Sequence record: NC_070998.1
Length of the DNA: 64,000 bases
Reading direction: 5' to 3' (one strand)
Both the position numbers and the translations under genes were made by a program. Numbering within the stretch: position 1 is the first letter of the stretch; the number at the start of each line of letters is the position of its first letter. This document shows positions 2,867 through 46,351 of this stretch, one piece after another. The notes beneath the pieces were generated by a model. The model did no database searches. It was not told the origin of the DNA and saw nothing but the letters and a program-made list of their open reading frames with translations.

Positions 2867-3439
2867 ATGACAATAAAGATACTCGGGATAGACCCAGGAA
2901 CTAATAGCTTAGGGTGTGCAGCTCTTGAGTTAGATGTTTACACTAAGAAATCATTTAAACTAATTTACGCTGATACTATTCTAGGTCAGAATAATGAGTT
3001 TGGCGTCCAGAACGATAATCCTCATCAGGTAAGGGCTAAAGGACTTACAAGAGTCTATTCTCACATCTTTGATATGATCGATCCTAATGTGGTGGCTTGT
3101 GAAGACAACTTCCTAGGAATCAATCCTGCTTCGTTTAAACGCCTTATCGAAGTAGTCTCTTATTTTAATATCCACACTGTGTTGAATAAATCAGATTGTC
3201 CATTTAAACTAGTACTCCCTAGACTTGCTAAACAGATTGTTAAAGCGGATTTCAAAGGTAGTACTAAGGACGATGTAACTCTTGGGTTGAAGAAATGTCC
3301 TTTTCTAGATTTAAATGGTTTTGACCTAGATCAACTTACTGAGCACGCTAACGACGCAATTCTTCTGGCCCTTTATATTGCAGTTCAATACTACAAAGAT
3401 TTAGGGTGGGATATTGTAAATGACAGTAAACAACAATAA
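2867..3439 (+). CDS. ruvC: RuvC-like Holliday junction resolvase
   Basis: RNase H-fold motifs ILGIDPG, VACED and C-terminal ANDAI acidic residues. Confidence 0.88.
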   Translation: MTIKILGIDPGTNSLGCAALELDVYTKKSFKLIYADTILGQNNEFGVQNDNPHQVRAKGLTRVYSHIFDMIDPNVVACEDNFLGINPASFKRLIEVVSYFNIHTVLNKSDCPFKLVLPRLAKQIVKADFKGSTKDDVTLGLKKCPFLDLNGFDLDQLTEHANDAILLALYIAVQYYKDLGWDIVNDSKQQ

Positions 3440-4079
3440 AGAAATCACGGATAAGAATGATCCGGCTTATTACGATTGGATTCCTGCTGTATTAAGATCT
3501 ACAGCGGGATTTAACTCTTGTATGACAGTTGCCGTTACAAGCATCATTTTTATTATGACCATTTACCATGGTGTAATAGAAAATCAAAAAGGTTGGTTTA
3601 ACGGTGTTCAGATGGTGCTTATGCTCTGCGGACCTGCCTTGTTAGGGTGGCATTTTGTAAATGCCAAGTCTATATTAGCCACTGTTTTATCAGTTGACGA
3701 AGGACAACATGAAACAAGCAGTAGTGACAAACCTTTAAAAATACCAGGTGGCGCAACGTTAGTAACCGATAATGATGTCGCCATTGAAAGAGAGTTGTTT
3801 GGATTAAGTACAGTATTAATGAGAGCGATTGCTGGCTGTATATCTGTGCACGCTATTTGTTTTGTTAGTATCGTTTTCACCATTACTATTAGGCAGGCGG
3901 TGATGGAGGGAAAAACATTACCCAGCGACATTGAAGTGTTAATTTCAGTATTACCTCCCATCATAACTTCATGGAGTTTTATGAGAGTAAGTAATACTCT
4001 AGCCGTTATAATCGCAGGCGGCGGTAAGTTTGCCCAATTTAGAGAAAAACTTGCTGAAGTTATCAAACCAAATAAGTAA
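3420..4079 (+). CDS. multi-pass membrane protein (holin candidate)
   Basis: Several hydrophobic segments, basic C-terminus, near spanin genes; holin role is inference. Confidence 0.55.
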   Translation: MTVNNNKEITDKNDPAYYDWIPAVLRSTAGFNSCMTVAVTSIIFIMTIYHGVIENQKGWFNGVQMVLMLCGPALLGWHFVNAKSILATVLSVDEGQHETSSSDKPLKIPGGATLVTDNDVAIERELFGLSTVLMRAIAGCISVHAICFVSIVFTITIRQAVMEGKTLPSDIEVLISVLPPIITSWSFMRVSNTLAVIIAGGGKFAQFREKLAEVIKPNK

Positions 4080-4080
4080 T

Positions 4081-4118
4081 TAAAATACTCGACGTCAATA
4101 TTGACGTCGAGTATTTTA
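4081..4118. terminator. perfect 38-bp palindrome / hairpin terminator
   Basis: taaaatactcgacgtcaat followed by its exact reverse complement, right after the stop at 4079. Confidence 0.8.
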
Positions 4119-4124
4119 TCATCT

Positions 4125-4150
4125 CTATTTATTTTTAAACCTATATTACT
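4125..4150 (+). promoter_or_regulatory. phiKZ-type early promoter (TATATTAC)
   Basis: ctctatttatttttaaacc-TATATTAC (core 4142-4149) upstream of HNH gene; matches the known phiKZ early core. Confidence 0.7.
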
Positions 4151-4178
4151 ATAGTGTATAAATAAAAAGAGGTTTAAA

Positions 4179-5009
4179 ATGAATATTGATAAAAGATTAC
4201 TAGCTTATAAACCAATTTCTATTACTCTTAATTTTGATTGGGATAATACTACTTACGATGAACGTGTCCAAATGCGACACGATTACATTGAAGAACAAAA
4301 GAAGAAAGATCCTAATTATGTTGGATATGACTTTATAGACACTTTTAAAGTAGATAATGAAACCAAAGAAATAATTTATTTAAAATGTTTTAAAAGATTA
4401 ATCAATAGTATTGGTCAGATGTTATATATAAATAAAGGAACTGTTTTTACAACATTAGGTAACGGTGAAAGTAACGGCTATAATAGAATAAAGATCAATA
4501 TAAATGGGAAAAGGAAACGATTACTTATCCATCGGGTTGTGGCTAGTACTTTTATCCCCATACCCACACATTTGAAAGATCATCAAGAGAACCTTGTTGT
4601 AAATCACAAAAACGACGTTAAAAATTGCAATCTTAGATCTAATCTTGAATGGTGTACACAAATTGAAAACATAACAAAGGCTTATGAGACAGGTGCTAGA
4701 AAATGTAAATCTTATAAATTCACTGTAAAACTAAAAGGTGCTTTATTTAATAAAGAATATTATTTTTCTAGAGCTTCAGATCTTAATTGCGTGGGGTTGT
4801 CAGAGAGAGCGGCTGAAAGGTCTATAAAAACAAAAATACCCTATTTCTTTGGAACCTGGAAACGTGTTAGTTTAAATGAAATTAAGGATAAAAGAATTGG
4901 AATTGATTTAGAAGCGATTAAAATTTTAAGAGATCCAAAATTAGGATGTAAATTTAATATTTCAGGTTGGGTTGGGACTTTTTGTGAAGATACACCATAT
5001 CCCAAATAA
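4179..5009 (+). CDS. free-standing HNH homing endonuclease, C-terminally truncated by an in-frame TAA
   Basis: HRVVASTF...VVNHKNDVKNCN...NLEWCT HNH motif; homology to the 23966 HNH continues in frame to 5204. Confidence 0.85.
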   Translation: MNIDKRLLAYKPISITLNFDWDNTTYDERVQMRHDYIEEQKKKDPNYVGYDFIDTFKVDNETKEIIYLKCFKRLINSIGQMLYINKGTVFTTLGNGESNGYNRIKININGKRKRLLIHRVVASTFIPIPTHLKDHQENLVVNHKNDVKNCNLRSNLEWCTQIENITKAYETGARKCKSYKFTVKLKGALFNKEYYFSRASDLNCVGLSERAAERSIKTKIPYFFGTWKRVSLNEIKDKRIGIDLEAIKILRDPKLGCKFNISGWVGTFCEDTPYPK

Positions 5010-5204
5010 CAGTTTGTCATTTTCGGAATGAATAATTTAATTGGTTATAACATCAACCCAGCAGCAGTATTTTCCTGTTGGACGGGAAAACTAAAAACAC
5101 ATAGGGGATGTACCTGGGAACGCTACCCTAGAAATGATGTTAGTGAAAAACTTACACACCCAAACAAAGAGCAGGGACAGTGGTTAAGAAAATTTTCTAC
5201 CTAA
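5010..5204 (+). pseudogene. in-frame continuation of the HNH gene beyond the premature stop
   Basis: 64 open codons QFVIFGM...HRGCTWE aligning with EFVIFGR...HQGCKWE of the 23966 HNH. Confidence 0.75.
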
Positions 5205-5289
5205 TACATTAGCTGTACTAATGAACTCCGGCAGTAGTTTAATAAACCTTAGAGAAAAACTTGCAGACATCATTAGACCAGGTAAATAA
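5203..5289 (+). pseudogene. orphaned 3' end of the 3420..4079 membrane gene
   Basis: NTLAVLMNSGSSLINLREKLADIIRPGK* vs NTLAVIIAGGGKFAQFREKLAEVIKPNK* (3993-4079): same length, 14/28 aa identical. Confidence 0.8.
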
Positions 5290-5299
5290 ACATAGGACA

Positions 5300-5333
5300 T
5301 AACTCTCACTCTCCAGTTGGAGAGTGAGAGTTA
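5300..5333. terminator. long-stem bidirectional hairpin terminator
   Basis: taactctcactctcc-agtt-ggagagtgagagtta between convergent genes. Confidence 0.8.
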
Positions 5334-5346
5334 ACTTATCTTTAAG

Positions 5347-5808
5347 TTATTTTTCGTTCAAGCTAGTGATAATCAAATCAATATTTTTAATGAGTTTATC
5401 TACAACTTGATTCAACCCATTGATTTGTTCACTAGAGACATCTAATTCCTTAGTAGTTGCAATAAGAATTAAACGAGTAGTTGCATAACAAGCATCTTTC
5501 GCTACTTCCTTAGTGCAGTCGTTGTGTTCAAGGAATAGATTGAGTTTATCCATCCTGGATTCACGTTTCTTCCAGTCTGGAACGTAAACGGAACTTGGTA
5601 CTTCAGTTAGGTTTTGTTTTAGCGCTACTATCTGATCCTTGTAAAGCTGAAGCTTTGCTAACTCCGACTTCATCTCTACGTAATTCCCCGCTGCTGTTAC
5701 TTTCGGCTGCGATGAGCAACTGGCGAGCGTAAAGATCATCAAGAGGACTGTCAATAGCCGTGTTATCATATCCGTATTTCTCATAGATACCTTTGTAACC
5801 TCTTTCAA
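5347..5808 (-). CDS. o-spanin (Rz1-like outer-membrane lipoprotein)
   Basis: Lipobox LLMIFTLAS-C, helical mature region, overlaps the i-spanin 3' end in another frame; true start probably at a downstream Met. Confidence 0.75.
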   Translation of the reverse strand: MKEVTKVSMRNTDMITRLLTVLLMIFTLASCSSQPKVTAAGNYVEMKSELAKLQLYKDQIVALKQNLTEVPSSVYVPDWKKRESRMDKLNLFLEHNDCTKEVAKDACYATTRLILIATTKELDVSSEQINGLNQVVDKLIKNIDLIITSLNEK

Positions 5809-19251: not shown

Positions 19252-19277
19252 CTATAATTTTTCAAACAGATATTATT
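19252..19277 (+). promoter_or_regulatory. early promoter motif
   Basis: tctataatttttcaaaca-GATATTAT (core 19269-19276). Confidence 0.6.
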
Positions 19278-23965: not shown

Positions 23966-25477
23966 ATGGACGGAGCATTAATGGTACATCTTATTTTTAA
24001 AGAAGACGTCACTGAGAAACGTGTAGAGTTTTTGACATCAGCTTTAGAGCAGTCTGATAACGTCAGGGTATACGATTACATTCAAGAACAATTGAAGCTT
24101 GATCCTGAGTTTGTAGCTTATGACTATTTGGAATACTGGGATGGTCGTGCCGATATTCATTATATCATTGATAAGTATGTTATTGACACTAAAGGTAATT
24201 ATTACTTAAATAATAACGGCATTTGTTCTCCACTAAAGGATAAAGAGAATAAGTGGGGAAAGTGGGTAGCTATAAACCAGAAATGCGAATATTTTCAAAC
24301 CCGCCGCATTGTTGCTAGTATGTATGTGCCTAAATCAGATAGTATCTTATTTATTCCATATTGGAAATTGGACGTAAAATATAAGGATGGGGATAGTAAA
24401 AATAAAAACTTTGACAACCTTGACTGGAGTGAAATAAAAGAAGGAAAAGATTATTTAGCTAGTTTACCTAAAACTTTAACTGAAATCCTTGGGTTAAAGT
24501 ATGATGAAACAATGAGTTACGAAGAACGTGTTCAAAAGCGTTACAATTACGTTAAAGAGCAATTGGAACTAGATCCTAACTATGAAGGTTGGGATGTGGT
24601 GGAATTTATTAGCGGTGGAATTTATCTAAAACACTTAGTGTGTTTTAATTACCTAATTTCTACCTCTGGTAGGGTTTTAACGACCGATAAAGACGAAAGA
24701 GGATATAAAATACTAACTGGAACGGTTGGTACGGATGAGTATAAGTTCCAAAATTTTCGCGTGAATAAAGATAGACATCGTTGTACTATACACCGTGCAG
24801 TATCTTCCACGTTTATTTACAAACCACCGCACTACCAACAAAAATTAAATCGCCTGGTTGTTAACCACAAAGATTTAGACAAATTAAATAATCATTTTAC
24901 TAATCTTGAATGGTGTACTACTAAAGAGAATGTCCGACATAGAGTTTTGGGATATCAGGCGACGAATATCTATTTCAATACAATCTTCGAAGGGACAGTA
25001 GAAATAGATTGTAAATATAAAGGTGTTAAGTTTAAAGTTTTTGGCGGTGAAGGTTTGGAGAGTATAGGGTTAGGACCTAATACTTTAAGTGGGGTATTTA
25101 CAAAAGGATATGAACTTTCATTTGGGTGTAGCTGGAAGATAATAAACCAAGAAGAAGCTGATAGACTTCCGGATATTCCTGAGTTTATTAAGGGCAAACT
25201 TCTTAATGATAGAAGTTTTATGGACTACCGCATTAAACCTACGAAGGGAACTGTTGTTAAGGACTGTGAATTTAAGGACCTGGAGTTTGTTATATTCGGT
25301 AGGAGAGAGTTTGTTGGATCTGGTTTTGACCAAGGGTCTGTAGGTAAGGCAATGAAAACTGATACTTTACACCAGGGGTGTAAGTGGGAGTTTATTACTA
25401 GAGATGAGGCTGAACTGTTACCAAGAGGACTAACTAAAGAACAAATGAAAACTATTATTACTAAAAGATGGCCTTAA
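23966..25477 (+). CDS. HNH homing endonuclease with duplicated N-terminal module
   Basis: HRAVSSTF...VVNHKDLDKLNNHFTNLEWCT; earlier degenerate copy; two C-terminal FxxFG...GCxW repeats. Confidence 0.85.
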   Translation: MDGALMVHLIFKEDVTEKRVEFLTSALEQSDNVRVYDYIQEQLKLDPEFVAYDYLEYWDGRADIHYIIDKYVIDTKGNYYLNNNGICSPLKDKENKWGKWVAINQKCEYFQTRRIVASMYVPKSDSILFIPYWKLDVKYKDGDSKNKNFDNLDWSEIKEGKDYLASLPKTLTEILGLKYDETMSYEERVQKRYNYVKEQLELDPNYEGWDVVEFISGGIYLKHLVCFNYLISTSGRVLTTDKDERGYKILTGTVGTDEYKFQNFRVNKDRHRCTIHRAVSSTFIYKPPHYQQKLNRLVVNHKDLDKLNNHFTNLEWCTTKENVRHRVLGYQATNIYFNTIFEGTVEIDCKYKGVKFKVFGGEGLESIGLGPNTLSGVFTKGYELSFGCSWKIINQEEADRLPDIPEFIKGKLLNDRSFMDYRIKPTKGTVVKDCEFKDLEFVIFGRREFVGSGFDQGSVGKAMKTDTLHQGCKWEFITRDEAELLPRGLTKEQMKTIITKRWP

Positions 25478-26073: not shown

Positions 26074-26232
26074 AGTTCACCCAACTCAATAGAGTTGGGT
26101 GAACAATTCATAATAATTTATTTATTTTATATTACATTGACCGAATAAATGACATTGGTAGAACACGATCTTTTTTTTTCTATTACAACTTCAATAAATA
26201 TAGTCCCACCGAAGCGGGGGTAATGTAATTAC
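26068..26232 (+). repeat. left arm of ~165-bp inverted repeat (partner 42825..42987)
   Basis: Manual alignment ~85% identical to the reverse complement of 42825-42987; contains 30-bp palindrome, TATATTAC and UUCG/GAA hairpin. Confidence 0.92.
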
Positions 26233-42824: not shown

Positions 42825-42987
42825 GTAAATACATTGCCCCCGCTTCGGCGGGTTTGTATTTATTGAAGTTGTAATAGAATGTACGATCGTGTTCTACTTG
42901 TCTCGCTTATTCTGTCAATGTAATATACAATAAATATATTATTCTGAATTGTTCACCCAACTCAATAGAGTTGGGTGAACTTTATTT
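42825..42987 (-). repeat. right arm of ~165-bp inverted repeat (partner 26068..26232)
   Basis: See left arm; includes cccgc-ttcg-gcggg hairpin and the 30-bp palindrome at 42951-42980. Confidence 0.92.
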
Positions 42988-46324: not shown

Positions 46325-46351
46325 TCCAAATATTTTCAAACATATATTATT
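46325..46351 (+). promoter_or_regulatory. early promoter motif
   Basis: tccaaatattttcaaaca-TATATTAT (core 46343-46350). Confidence 0.6.

Follow-up and report, generated by a model that had tools for sequence, protein, structure and literature searches.

Background

How does a homing endonuclease gene come to stand between two copies of the same gene end? This question is raised by a locus within the 64,000-nucleotide stretch of DNA analysed here (sequence record NC_070998.1; termed here the window), where an HNH endonuclease gene lies directly behind a membrane-protein gene, PS1_0128, and is itself followed by a second, diverged copy of the last 28 codons of that gene. With 100% identity, the window corresponds to Aeromonas phage PS1 (genus Ferozepurvirus; MN032614.2, 237 kb), and a position in that record is the window position + 124000. 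The analysis presented below suggests that the locus probably arose by intronless homing from a donor carrying another allele of the membrane-protein gene, and that the native gene end of PS1 was left behind as a scar.

PS1 is compared here with four HNH-free isolates (PS2, AVP1, ACP1 and pAEv1810) and with loci from metagenomes. The allele class of the PS2-like isolates is termed type A; a second, diverged allele class, which was found by a protein search of metagenomes and to which the HNH-free contig L010 belongs, is termed type B. The features that make up the locus are as follows:

3420-4079, + strand: membrane-protein gene PS1_0128 (219 residues), a chimera of PS2-identical sequence (3420-3631) and a type-B allele (3632-4079)
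3621-3631, unstranded: left crossover interval (3620 is the last site at which PS1 equals PS2 and differs from L010; 3632 is the first PS1/PS2 difference)
3632-3992, + strand: co-converted donor flank, i.e., type-B codons 71-191 of the membrane-protein gene, by alignment to PS2 and L010
3993-4079, + strand: working gene end, type-B allele, the upstream copy of the repeat (86/87 nucleotides (nt) shared with the native end of L010, 58/87 with PS2)
4081-4118, unstranded: perfect 38-base-pair (bp) palindrome, a terminator-like hairpin for the membrane-protein gene and the first element of the cassette (arms 4081-4099 and 4100-4118, 100% complementary, no spacer)
4124-4178, + strand: predicted cassette promoter and 5' leader (an AT-rich stretch, AAACC-TATATTAC at 4142-4149, and the ribosome-binding site (RBS) AAGAGG at 4167-4172)
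4179-5009, + strand: N-terminal piece of the HNH endonuclease gene, 276 codons (phrog_59, E = 2.4e-25), ending at a premature in-frame TAA at 5007-5009
5010-5204, + strand: remaining 64 codons of the HNH frame and their stop TAA (5202-5204), corresponding to a C-terminal module that has decayed (by tblastn to the C-terminal part of full-length homologues)
5203-5289, + strand: displaced native gene end, type-A allele, 28 codons plus TAA (84/87 nt shared with PS2)
5300-5333, unstranded: native bidirectional terminator hairpin, common to all HNH-free relatives and now 3' of the remnant

Results

Two natural alleles of one gene end

Each copy of the gene end comprises 28 codons and a stop (NTLAV...KPNK at 3993-4079, NTLAV...RPGK at 5203-5289) and begins after T|AATAC; the two share 14/28 residues and 57/87 nt. 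Chance is excluded as the source of this match, since a tblastn comparison of the tail of the gene with the 360 nt 3' of the HNH gene yields E ~4e-8 (in a small search space). The initial annotation of this DNA, which was made from the sequence letters, had reported two copies of equal length with 14 of 28 residues in common and, between them, a perfect 38-bp palindrome, a promoter motif and an HNH open reading frame (ORF); all of these lie where it placed them. The order of the parts is gene core (3420-3992), inserted end (3993-4079), HNH frame (4179-5204) and native remnant (5203-5289).

The HNH-free isolates indicate which copy belongs to the PS1 lineage. At the insertion site all four lack 1214 bp and encode a 218-residue membrane protein, so that PS1 and these isolates display the presence and absence, at a single locus among near-identical genomes, that is characteristic of a homing endonuclease. 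It had been predicted that the gene end of HNH-free relatives would resemble the downstream rather than the upstream copy, and this is the case for PS2 (84/87 versus 58/87 nt), AVP1, ACP1 and pAEv1810. Nor was an HNH-free relative encountered that ends in the upstream copy and also carries the downstream one: in L010, the HNH-free metagenome relative aligned at the DNA level, the stop codon directly adjoins the shared terminator. By these allele comparisons, 5203-5289 is the displaced native gene end of PS1.

The inserted end is in frame with the gene core and is closed by a stop codon and a hairpin, while the remnant is preceded immediately by an in-frame stop (5185-5187) and lacks a start codon with an RBS. 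We infer that the inserted end is the one that is expressed and that the remnant is silent, that is, untranslated. GenBank has a 38-residue 'hypothetical protein', PS1_0130, on the - strand at 5184-5300, which coincides exactly with the displaced gene end; since the HNH-free relatives lack this gene, it is probably the scar miscalled as a gene.

Extent and source of the imported DNA

The foreign DNA extends beyond the repeat. From 1300, if not earlier, through 3631 PS1 does not differ from PS2 (100% identity), after which identity drops to 50-80% up to 4079; to the right of the insert they are identical over 5212-5676, the next difference is at 5677, and from there onward the right flank of PS1 is a mosaic relative to PS2. 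On these comparisons the imported patch is approximately 3632-5202 (1.57 kb), and it includes the last 149 codons, or roughly the last two-thirds, of the membrane-protein gene. Over 3632-4079 the patch shares 91% DNA identity with the HNH-free contig L010 and 66% with PS2. Donor markers thus form a co-conversion tract beside the insert, with sequence 100% identical to PS2 to its left, and the left crossover interval falls within a stretch conserved in all relatives.

The similarity of L010 to PS1 stops exactly at the stop codon (4079), after which L010 has the same terminator that lies 3' of the PS1 remnant, with neither an HNH gene nor a second copy of the gene end; the HNH cassette proper therefore starts at 4080, directly after the type-B stop codon. 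Among 12 further HNH-free type-B metagenome loci for which downstream sequence is available, 10 leave, by their called genes, only about 57 nt to the next gene, and in the other two (L039 and L040) the gap fits a small next ORF that was left uncalled. Because L010 carries the replacement end natively, without an HNH gene, and because in PS1 this end is contiguous with 360 further donor bases, alignment identifies it as an ordinary type-B allele, i.e., as co-converted donor flank rather than a purpose-made, recoded piece. This bears on two earlier proposals. The hairpin, promoter and HNH gene do constitute a portable module, as had been suggested, but the foreign DNA begins at about 3632, 360 nt before the start at 3993 that had been assigned to the mobile unit. 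The proposal that the unit recodes the gene end does not hold, given that the new end occurs naturally in HNH-free type-B phages and that the difference is ordinary allelic divergence.

At the right boundary the T|AATAC that opens the downstream copy shares bases with the stop codon of the HNH frame (5202-5204). The cassette end (...ACCTAA) and the type-A target (...GCAGCTAATAC) have CTAA in common, a microhomology that is compatible with microhomology-mediated joining. Within the first 474 nt beyond the joint (5203-5676) PS1 and PS2 differ only at 5208, 5209 and 5211, that is, 6-9 nt from the joint; 5211 is type-B-like, and 5208 and 5209 match neither allele. These changes could represent a short right co-conversion tract from a remnant-bearing donor, errors of junction repair, or the loss of a target half-site. 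As counted from the alignment, the type-A and type-B alleles themselves differ at about 16/40 positions flanking the junction.

Two other observations concern exchange at this gene. A 681-nt ENA contig (P0002) encodes a hybrid membrane protein that is type A up to about residue 145 and type B thereafter; as an independent A/B hybrid with a different crossover, it implies that exchange at the membrane-protein gene has occurred more than once. There is also a 25-nt direct repeat (3401-3425 and 3642-3666, 22/25 matching), the first copy of which covers the end of the RuvC gene and the start of the membrane-protein gene and the second of which lies just inside the type-B patch; it may be due to chance.

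A portable cassette

The palindrome at 4081-4118, as RNA, has a predicted folding energy of -25.9 kcal/mol (z = -9.1). A hairpin followed by a 58-nt promoter/RBS block also occurs upstream of HNH paralogues at at least 4 loci, where the encoded proteins are only about 50% identical; it is this recurrence that identifies hairpin, promoter and HNH gene as a portable module. The 58-nt block fits the published promoter consensus for phiKZ, 201phi2-1 and EL (PMC7058600, Table 2) and is therefore a predicted phage early-type promoter. The window contains 6 copies of the extended motif versus 0.57 expected; neither the bare TATATTAC octamer (7 versus 4 expected) nor sigma-70-type promoters (8 found versus 9 expected) are enriched there.

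A decaying endonuclease gene

Homologues of the HNH protein with 335-348 residues occur in PS2, ACP1, CF8, ZPAH34 and about 50 metagenome clusters, and the PS1 frame is colinear with full-length homologues of 343-348 residues; the closest HNH protein elsewhere, among 5.8 billion proteins, is 52% identical. The match to the Pfam family HNH_3 (PF13392) is weak (residues 137-164; 17.1 bits versus a Pfam cutoff of 24.8). The N-terminal piece nevertheless keeps 39/42 family-invariant residues, and none of the three that are lost (alignment columns 88, 279 and 283) falls within the NHK...SNLEW...N motif, so that the letters of the catalytic motif (HNH_3/YosQ-like) are all present in PS1.

The earlier report of an HNH gene between the copies was correct as to its presence and missed its interruption by TAA at 5007-5009, beyond which the frame continues to 5204. 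At this column most full-length relatives have Glu, and ZPAH34 has Gln. The C-terminal remainder keeps only 5/9 invariant residues, and PS1 thus lacks an intact frame with a DNA-binding C-terminal module. Because of the premature stop and the decayed C-terminus, the predicted PS1 protein is probably no longer an active homing enzyme; the gene exemplifies the phase of degeneration in the homing-endonuclease life cycle.

The family is multi-copy in PS1-like phages. Seven copies were examined in PS1, from the parts of its genome outside 100-124 kb and 188-237 kb, and no gene-end duplication was seen at PS2_0045-type loci or at metagenome locus L024. A short HNH protein of PS1 (PS1_0016, 167 residues) is encoded between tRNA-Met and tRNA-Arg (L041, 22327-23061 in PS1 record coordinates); a candidate flank duplication there turned out to be merely tRNA-to-tRNA similarity.

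The same layout at a second gene

The Chaoshanvirus phages CF8 and ZPAH34 carry a full-length HNH gene of the same family 3' of a DEAD/ResIII-like helicase gene. In both phages the last 23 codons and the stop of the helicase gene are repeated as a 72-nt remnant, which begins inside the last HNH codons in another frame; the terminator after the remnant matches that of the HNH-free phage AerS_266, and a different hairpin follows the working copy. In PS1, CF8 and ZPAH34 alike, then, the right joint falls in the final codons of the HNH ORF. Between ZPAH34 and AerS_266, no co-conversion tract is visible above a general divergence of 10-15%. Working copy and remnant differ at 13-17/72 nt yet at only 0-1 residues, and from these nearly synonymous-only differences it follows that both copies evolved as functional ends in separate lineages and that the remnants are undecayed. 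By sequence comparison, therefore, gene-end duplication is a recurrent layout, found at two genes in three phages, but a minority outcome.

The same helicase gene is much longer in AerS_266 (L011, 1-2235, annotated as a 'DOD-type homing endonuclease') and in the metagenome locus L020 (380-2950, with a weak LAGLIDADG_3 match). This suggests an intein in the gene, which would make it a hot spot for selfish nucleases.

Discussion

A model for the origin of the locus, and its alternatives

Because the allele before the event (PS2), the donor-type allele (L010) and the allele after it (PS1) can all be inspected directly, as can the two boundaries, the modular structure of the cassette and the second gene at which the layout recurs, a fairly specific course of events can be proposed. 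A very recent ancestor of PS1, identical to PS2 in this region, would have recombined with a diverged relative that bore the HNH cassette directly behind a type-B membrane-protein gene, and would thereby have gained the patch 3632-5202, which consists of 149 codons from the end of the donor's gene followed by hairpin, promoter and HNH gene. On its left the patch would be bounded by a homologous crossover at 3621-3631; on its right, where it ends at the HNH stop, it would have been fused to the recipient gene at a point 28 codons short of that gene's end. The membrane-protein gene would in this way have stayed full length with the donor's end, and the recipient's end would have been kept downstream, untranslated. 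The event was presumably started by a double-strand break made by this HNH enzyme near AGC/T|AATAC of the type-A allele, with the type-B allele presumably resistant to cutting; cleavage at AGT^AATAC, where the initial annotation had placed the insertion, is likewise presumed.

The right joint could have formed in two ways. The donor may already have carried the remnant, which would then have served as a right homology arm, so that the layout is inherited at each homing event; this is favoured by the occurrence of undecayed remnants in two phages that are 70% diverged and by the clustering of changes near the junction. Alternatively, the donor may have carried a plain intergenic cassette, and the remnant may have arisen in PS1 through one-sided homologous repair combined with end joining at CTAA; this is favoured by the metagenome loci L019 and L020, described next, and by the CTAA microhomology.

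Several observations weigh against homing driven by this enzyme. L019 and L020 have the cassette 3' of the same helicase gene as CF8 and ZPAH34 but without a remnant, the HNH stop adjoining the native terminator, which makes it possible that the layout is no strategy but a by-product that arises occasionally. A coding duplication is present at only 1/7 of the HNH copies examined in PS1. Since the flanks are still 100% identical to PS2, most of the decay of the HNH gene probably predates the transfer, in which case the enzyme may not have driven its own move. The cassette occupies the membrane-gene locus in PS1 alone, versus four HNH-free isolates and, among metagenome loci with sequence beyond the gene, 13 that are HNH-free. 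Finally, a donor combining the type-B allele with this cassette was not found: the membrane protein had no matches in viral_contigs, the cassette hairpin had no exact match in viral_contigs or genome_contigs, and an HNH profile search yielded 4 loci in metagenome_contigs and 0 in viral_contigs.

Some of these same observations are what would be expected if the cassette had been a mere passenger. Mosaic recombination between co-infecting relatives, together with one illegitimate joint, would then have moved an HNH gene that was already dead; the nuclease would have been uninvolved, or a paralogue would have acted in trans, and the remnant would be accidental. The premature stop and decayed C-terminus next to flanks 100% identical to PS2, the rarity of the cassette at the membrane-gene locus, and the mosaic right flank of PS1 from 5677 on all fit such a scenario, and trans-homing of a defunct endonuclease is documented for T4 mobE and I-TevIII (PMC2790892). 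We nonetheless consider it unlikely: the same layout with the same HNH family occurs at a different gene in CF8 and ZPAH34, where the HNH protein is full length; the right joint falls within the last HNH codons in all three cases; and the nonsense codon itself may postdate the transfer.

Far less probable is that the insert is a group I or group II intron with an HNH ORF, such that 3992|5203 is an exon junction and the mRNA encodes the type-A end. HNH genes of phiKZ-like phages can indeed be intron-borne (PhiPA3 gp210, PMC11620839), and the frame is conserved across 3992|5203. However, no Rfam intron family matches 3300-5600 at E <= 1, let alone at E = 0.01; the sequence after 3992 is the contiguous type-B native end, whose own stop closes the gene before the insert; and the insert opens with a strong terminator hairpin and a promoter.

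It is similarly hard to credit that the structure is an assembly artefact in which reads of a co-isolated type-B phage were merged into PS1, even though PS1 is the only record with this structure at the membrane-protein gene and shares both its river-water source and its host with PS2. An ordered succession of end, cassette and second end with clean single-base joints is not a normal assembler product, and an analogous structure is present in two independently sequenced phages. Last, a local tandem duplication of the gene end in the PS1 lineage, followed by divergence and a later HNH insertion, would explain why the copies agree in length and frame but is refuted by the allele identities, in that each copy is near-identical to a different natural allele (86/87 for L010, 84/87 for PS2) versus 57/87 mutually, and flanks 100% identical to PS2 allow no time for the copies to have diverged by 34% where they stand.

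Homing from a type-B donor thus accounts best for the locus. A more general proposition is that gene-end replacement constitutes a heritable third way, next to introns or inteins and to residence between genes, in which phage homing endonucleases can occupy conserved coding sequence: the cassette travels with a substitute gene end and the native end is kept as a right arm that is renewed at each invasion. Such renewal would explain why the CF8 and ZPAH34 remnants have stayed perfect frames with nearly synonymous-only differences; for the present we regard the proposition as possible but doubtful.

Relation to known systems

The closest parallels are in fungal mitochondria, where so-called mORFs have a foreign C-terminus (atp6 of Allomyces macrogynus; atp6, atp9, cox2 and nad3 of Glomus sp.; atp9 of Rhizopus; cox2 of Mortierella; PMC3630166) and where C-terminal duplications flank homing-endonuclease ORFs in Endoconidiophora atp6 and cob (PMC6279837). 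As in these cases, the order in PS1 is gene core, in-frame foreign C-terminus, endonuclease ORF and displaced native C-terminus, the gene remaining full length; and the remnant matches endonuclease-free relatives, the inserted end being the diverged one (63.5% nt identity between copies in Glomus atp6, 66% in PS1). By two of the marks of an mORF, then--this layout order, and a native remnant paired with a foreign inserted end--PS1 qualifies. It differs in that the host is a phage; in that the nuclease is an HNH rather than a LAGLIDADG or GIY-YIG enzyme; in that the HNH gene forms a cistron of its own, served by a dedicated terminator hairpin and phage promoter, rather than being in phase or co-transcribed with the host gene; and in that the donor-type allele exists in nature without an endonuclease, from which it follows that the 'foreign end' of PS1 is a co-converted flank.

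The free-standing endonucleases of T4-type phages likewise adjoin a conserved gene, are present or absent among close relatives, leave a co-conversion tract of donor markers, and have their own genome protected by allelic differences at the target. In the T4 cases, however, both flanks recombine homologously, and no duplication of a gene end is described. A review of T4-type phage mobile elements, in which no word beginning with 'duplicat' occurs, describes intergenic endonucleases and gene splitting, the latter through insertions into coding sequences that divide a gene into two polypeptides (mobE in Aeh1 nrdA; mobA in T4 gene 60). Two recent surveys of phage HNH genes do not describe the gene-end replacement layout either. 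The layout is thus known from fungal mitochondria, and no description of it was found for phages.

Integrating elements can bring along a replacement 3' end for the tRNA gene or protein gene that they enter, and there, too, the target remains functional with a gene end provided by the insert, its former end being displaced. Those elements rely on a site-specific recombinase and short identical att cores, whereas the PS1 insert has no integrase, its copies are only 66% identical, and its left boundary is a homologous crossover 360 nt upstream.

Free-standing homing endonucleases of phages have been thought to sit between genes or to split them, and the PS1 locus represents a third outcome, in which the end that arrives from the donor keeps the target gene working and that of the recipient becomes a datable scar. 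Because PS1, PS2 and L010 stand for the after, before and donor-type states with 100% identical flanks, the boundaries of a single natural event can be read to about ten bases. CF8 and ZPAH34, with a full-length HNH gene in the same layout, and AerS_266, with the empty site, together offer a tractable system for studying the cut site, the formation of the right joint and the inheritance of the layout. On the practical side, scars can be annotated as genes (as with PS1_0130), and foreign gene ends can distort single-gene phylogenies.

If gene-end replacement is indeed a heritable way of life, such cassettes could also act in the competition between co-infecting chimalliviruses. It is reasonable, by homology, to regard PS1 as a phiKZ-like, nucleus-forming-type jumbo phage, given that chimallin (PF25677, from precomputed Pfam matches on full-length homologues) is encoded beside a paralogous HNH locus in close relatives of PS1 and that the PS1 genome also has genes for a phiKZ-like RNA polymerase and internal head proteins. 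A Pfam search with the first 297 residues of PS2_0047 gave no chimallin match, the chimallin statement being based on those precomputed matches. That HNH endonucleases of nucleus-forming phages can mediate interference, as the initial annotation stated by way of background, is a real phenomenon: the intron-encoded gp210 of PhiPA3 interferes with co-infecting PhiKZ (PMC11620839); nothing in the present analysis shows interference for PS1. Like gp210, the PS1 enzyme is an HNH homing endonuclease of a phiKZ-like jumbo phage, presumably directed at a conserved gene of relatives; gp210 is intron-borne and shown to be active, whereas the PS1 HNH is free-standing, truncated and probably inactive.

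Additional observations

The start of PS1_0128 overlaps the end of a RuvC-like resolvase gene. Its product has four hydrophobic segments, two of them strong and two weaker, with hydropathy maxima at residues 35-53 and 137-155, and homologues are encoded by contigs of up to 279 kb; together these features characterise it, at the level of prediction, as a conserved jumbo-phage membrane protein. The label 'holin-like' that the gene had been given lacks family support: PHROGs 14084 and 11099, to which it belongs, are of unknown function, and it matches no Pfam or NCBIfam family, including any holin family (a nearby endolysin gene was not looked for).

The extended motif of the cassette promoter, TTTYAAACMTAYATTAY, is also found on the + strand at window positions 19260, 46334, 51614, 55322 and 61096, which are candidate early promoters; an ATG start can be read just after those at 46334 and 61096. 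Two near-identical stretches of about 60 nt on opposite strands (within 26088-26190, +, and 42865-42967, -) combine an AT-rich run, TATATTAC and ATTGAC and resemble a repeated promoter element.

A second HNH ORF of the same family (23966-25477, + strand, 503 residues) lies between the DNA ligase and RNase H genes. It appears to contain an extra partial N-terminal copy (tblastn matches at 24071-24331 and 24446-24934) ahead of the C-terminal module (25283-25414), and the stretch is strongly variable among relatives, which cover 38-75% of it.

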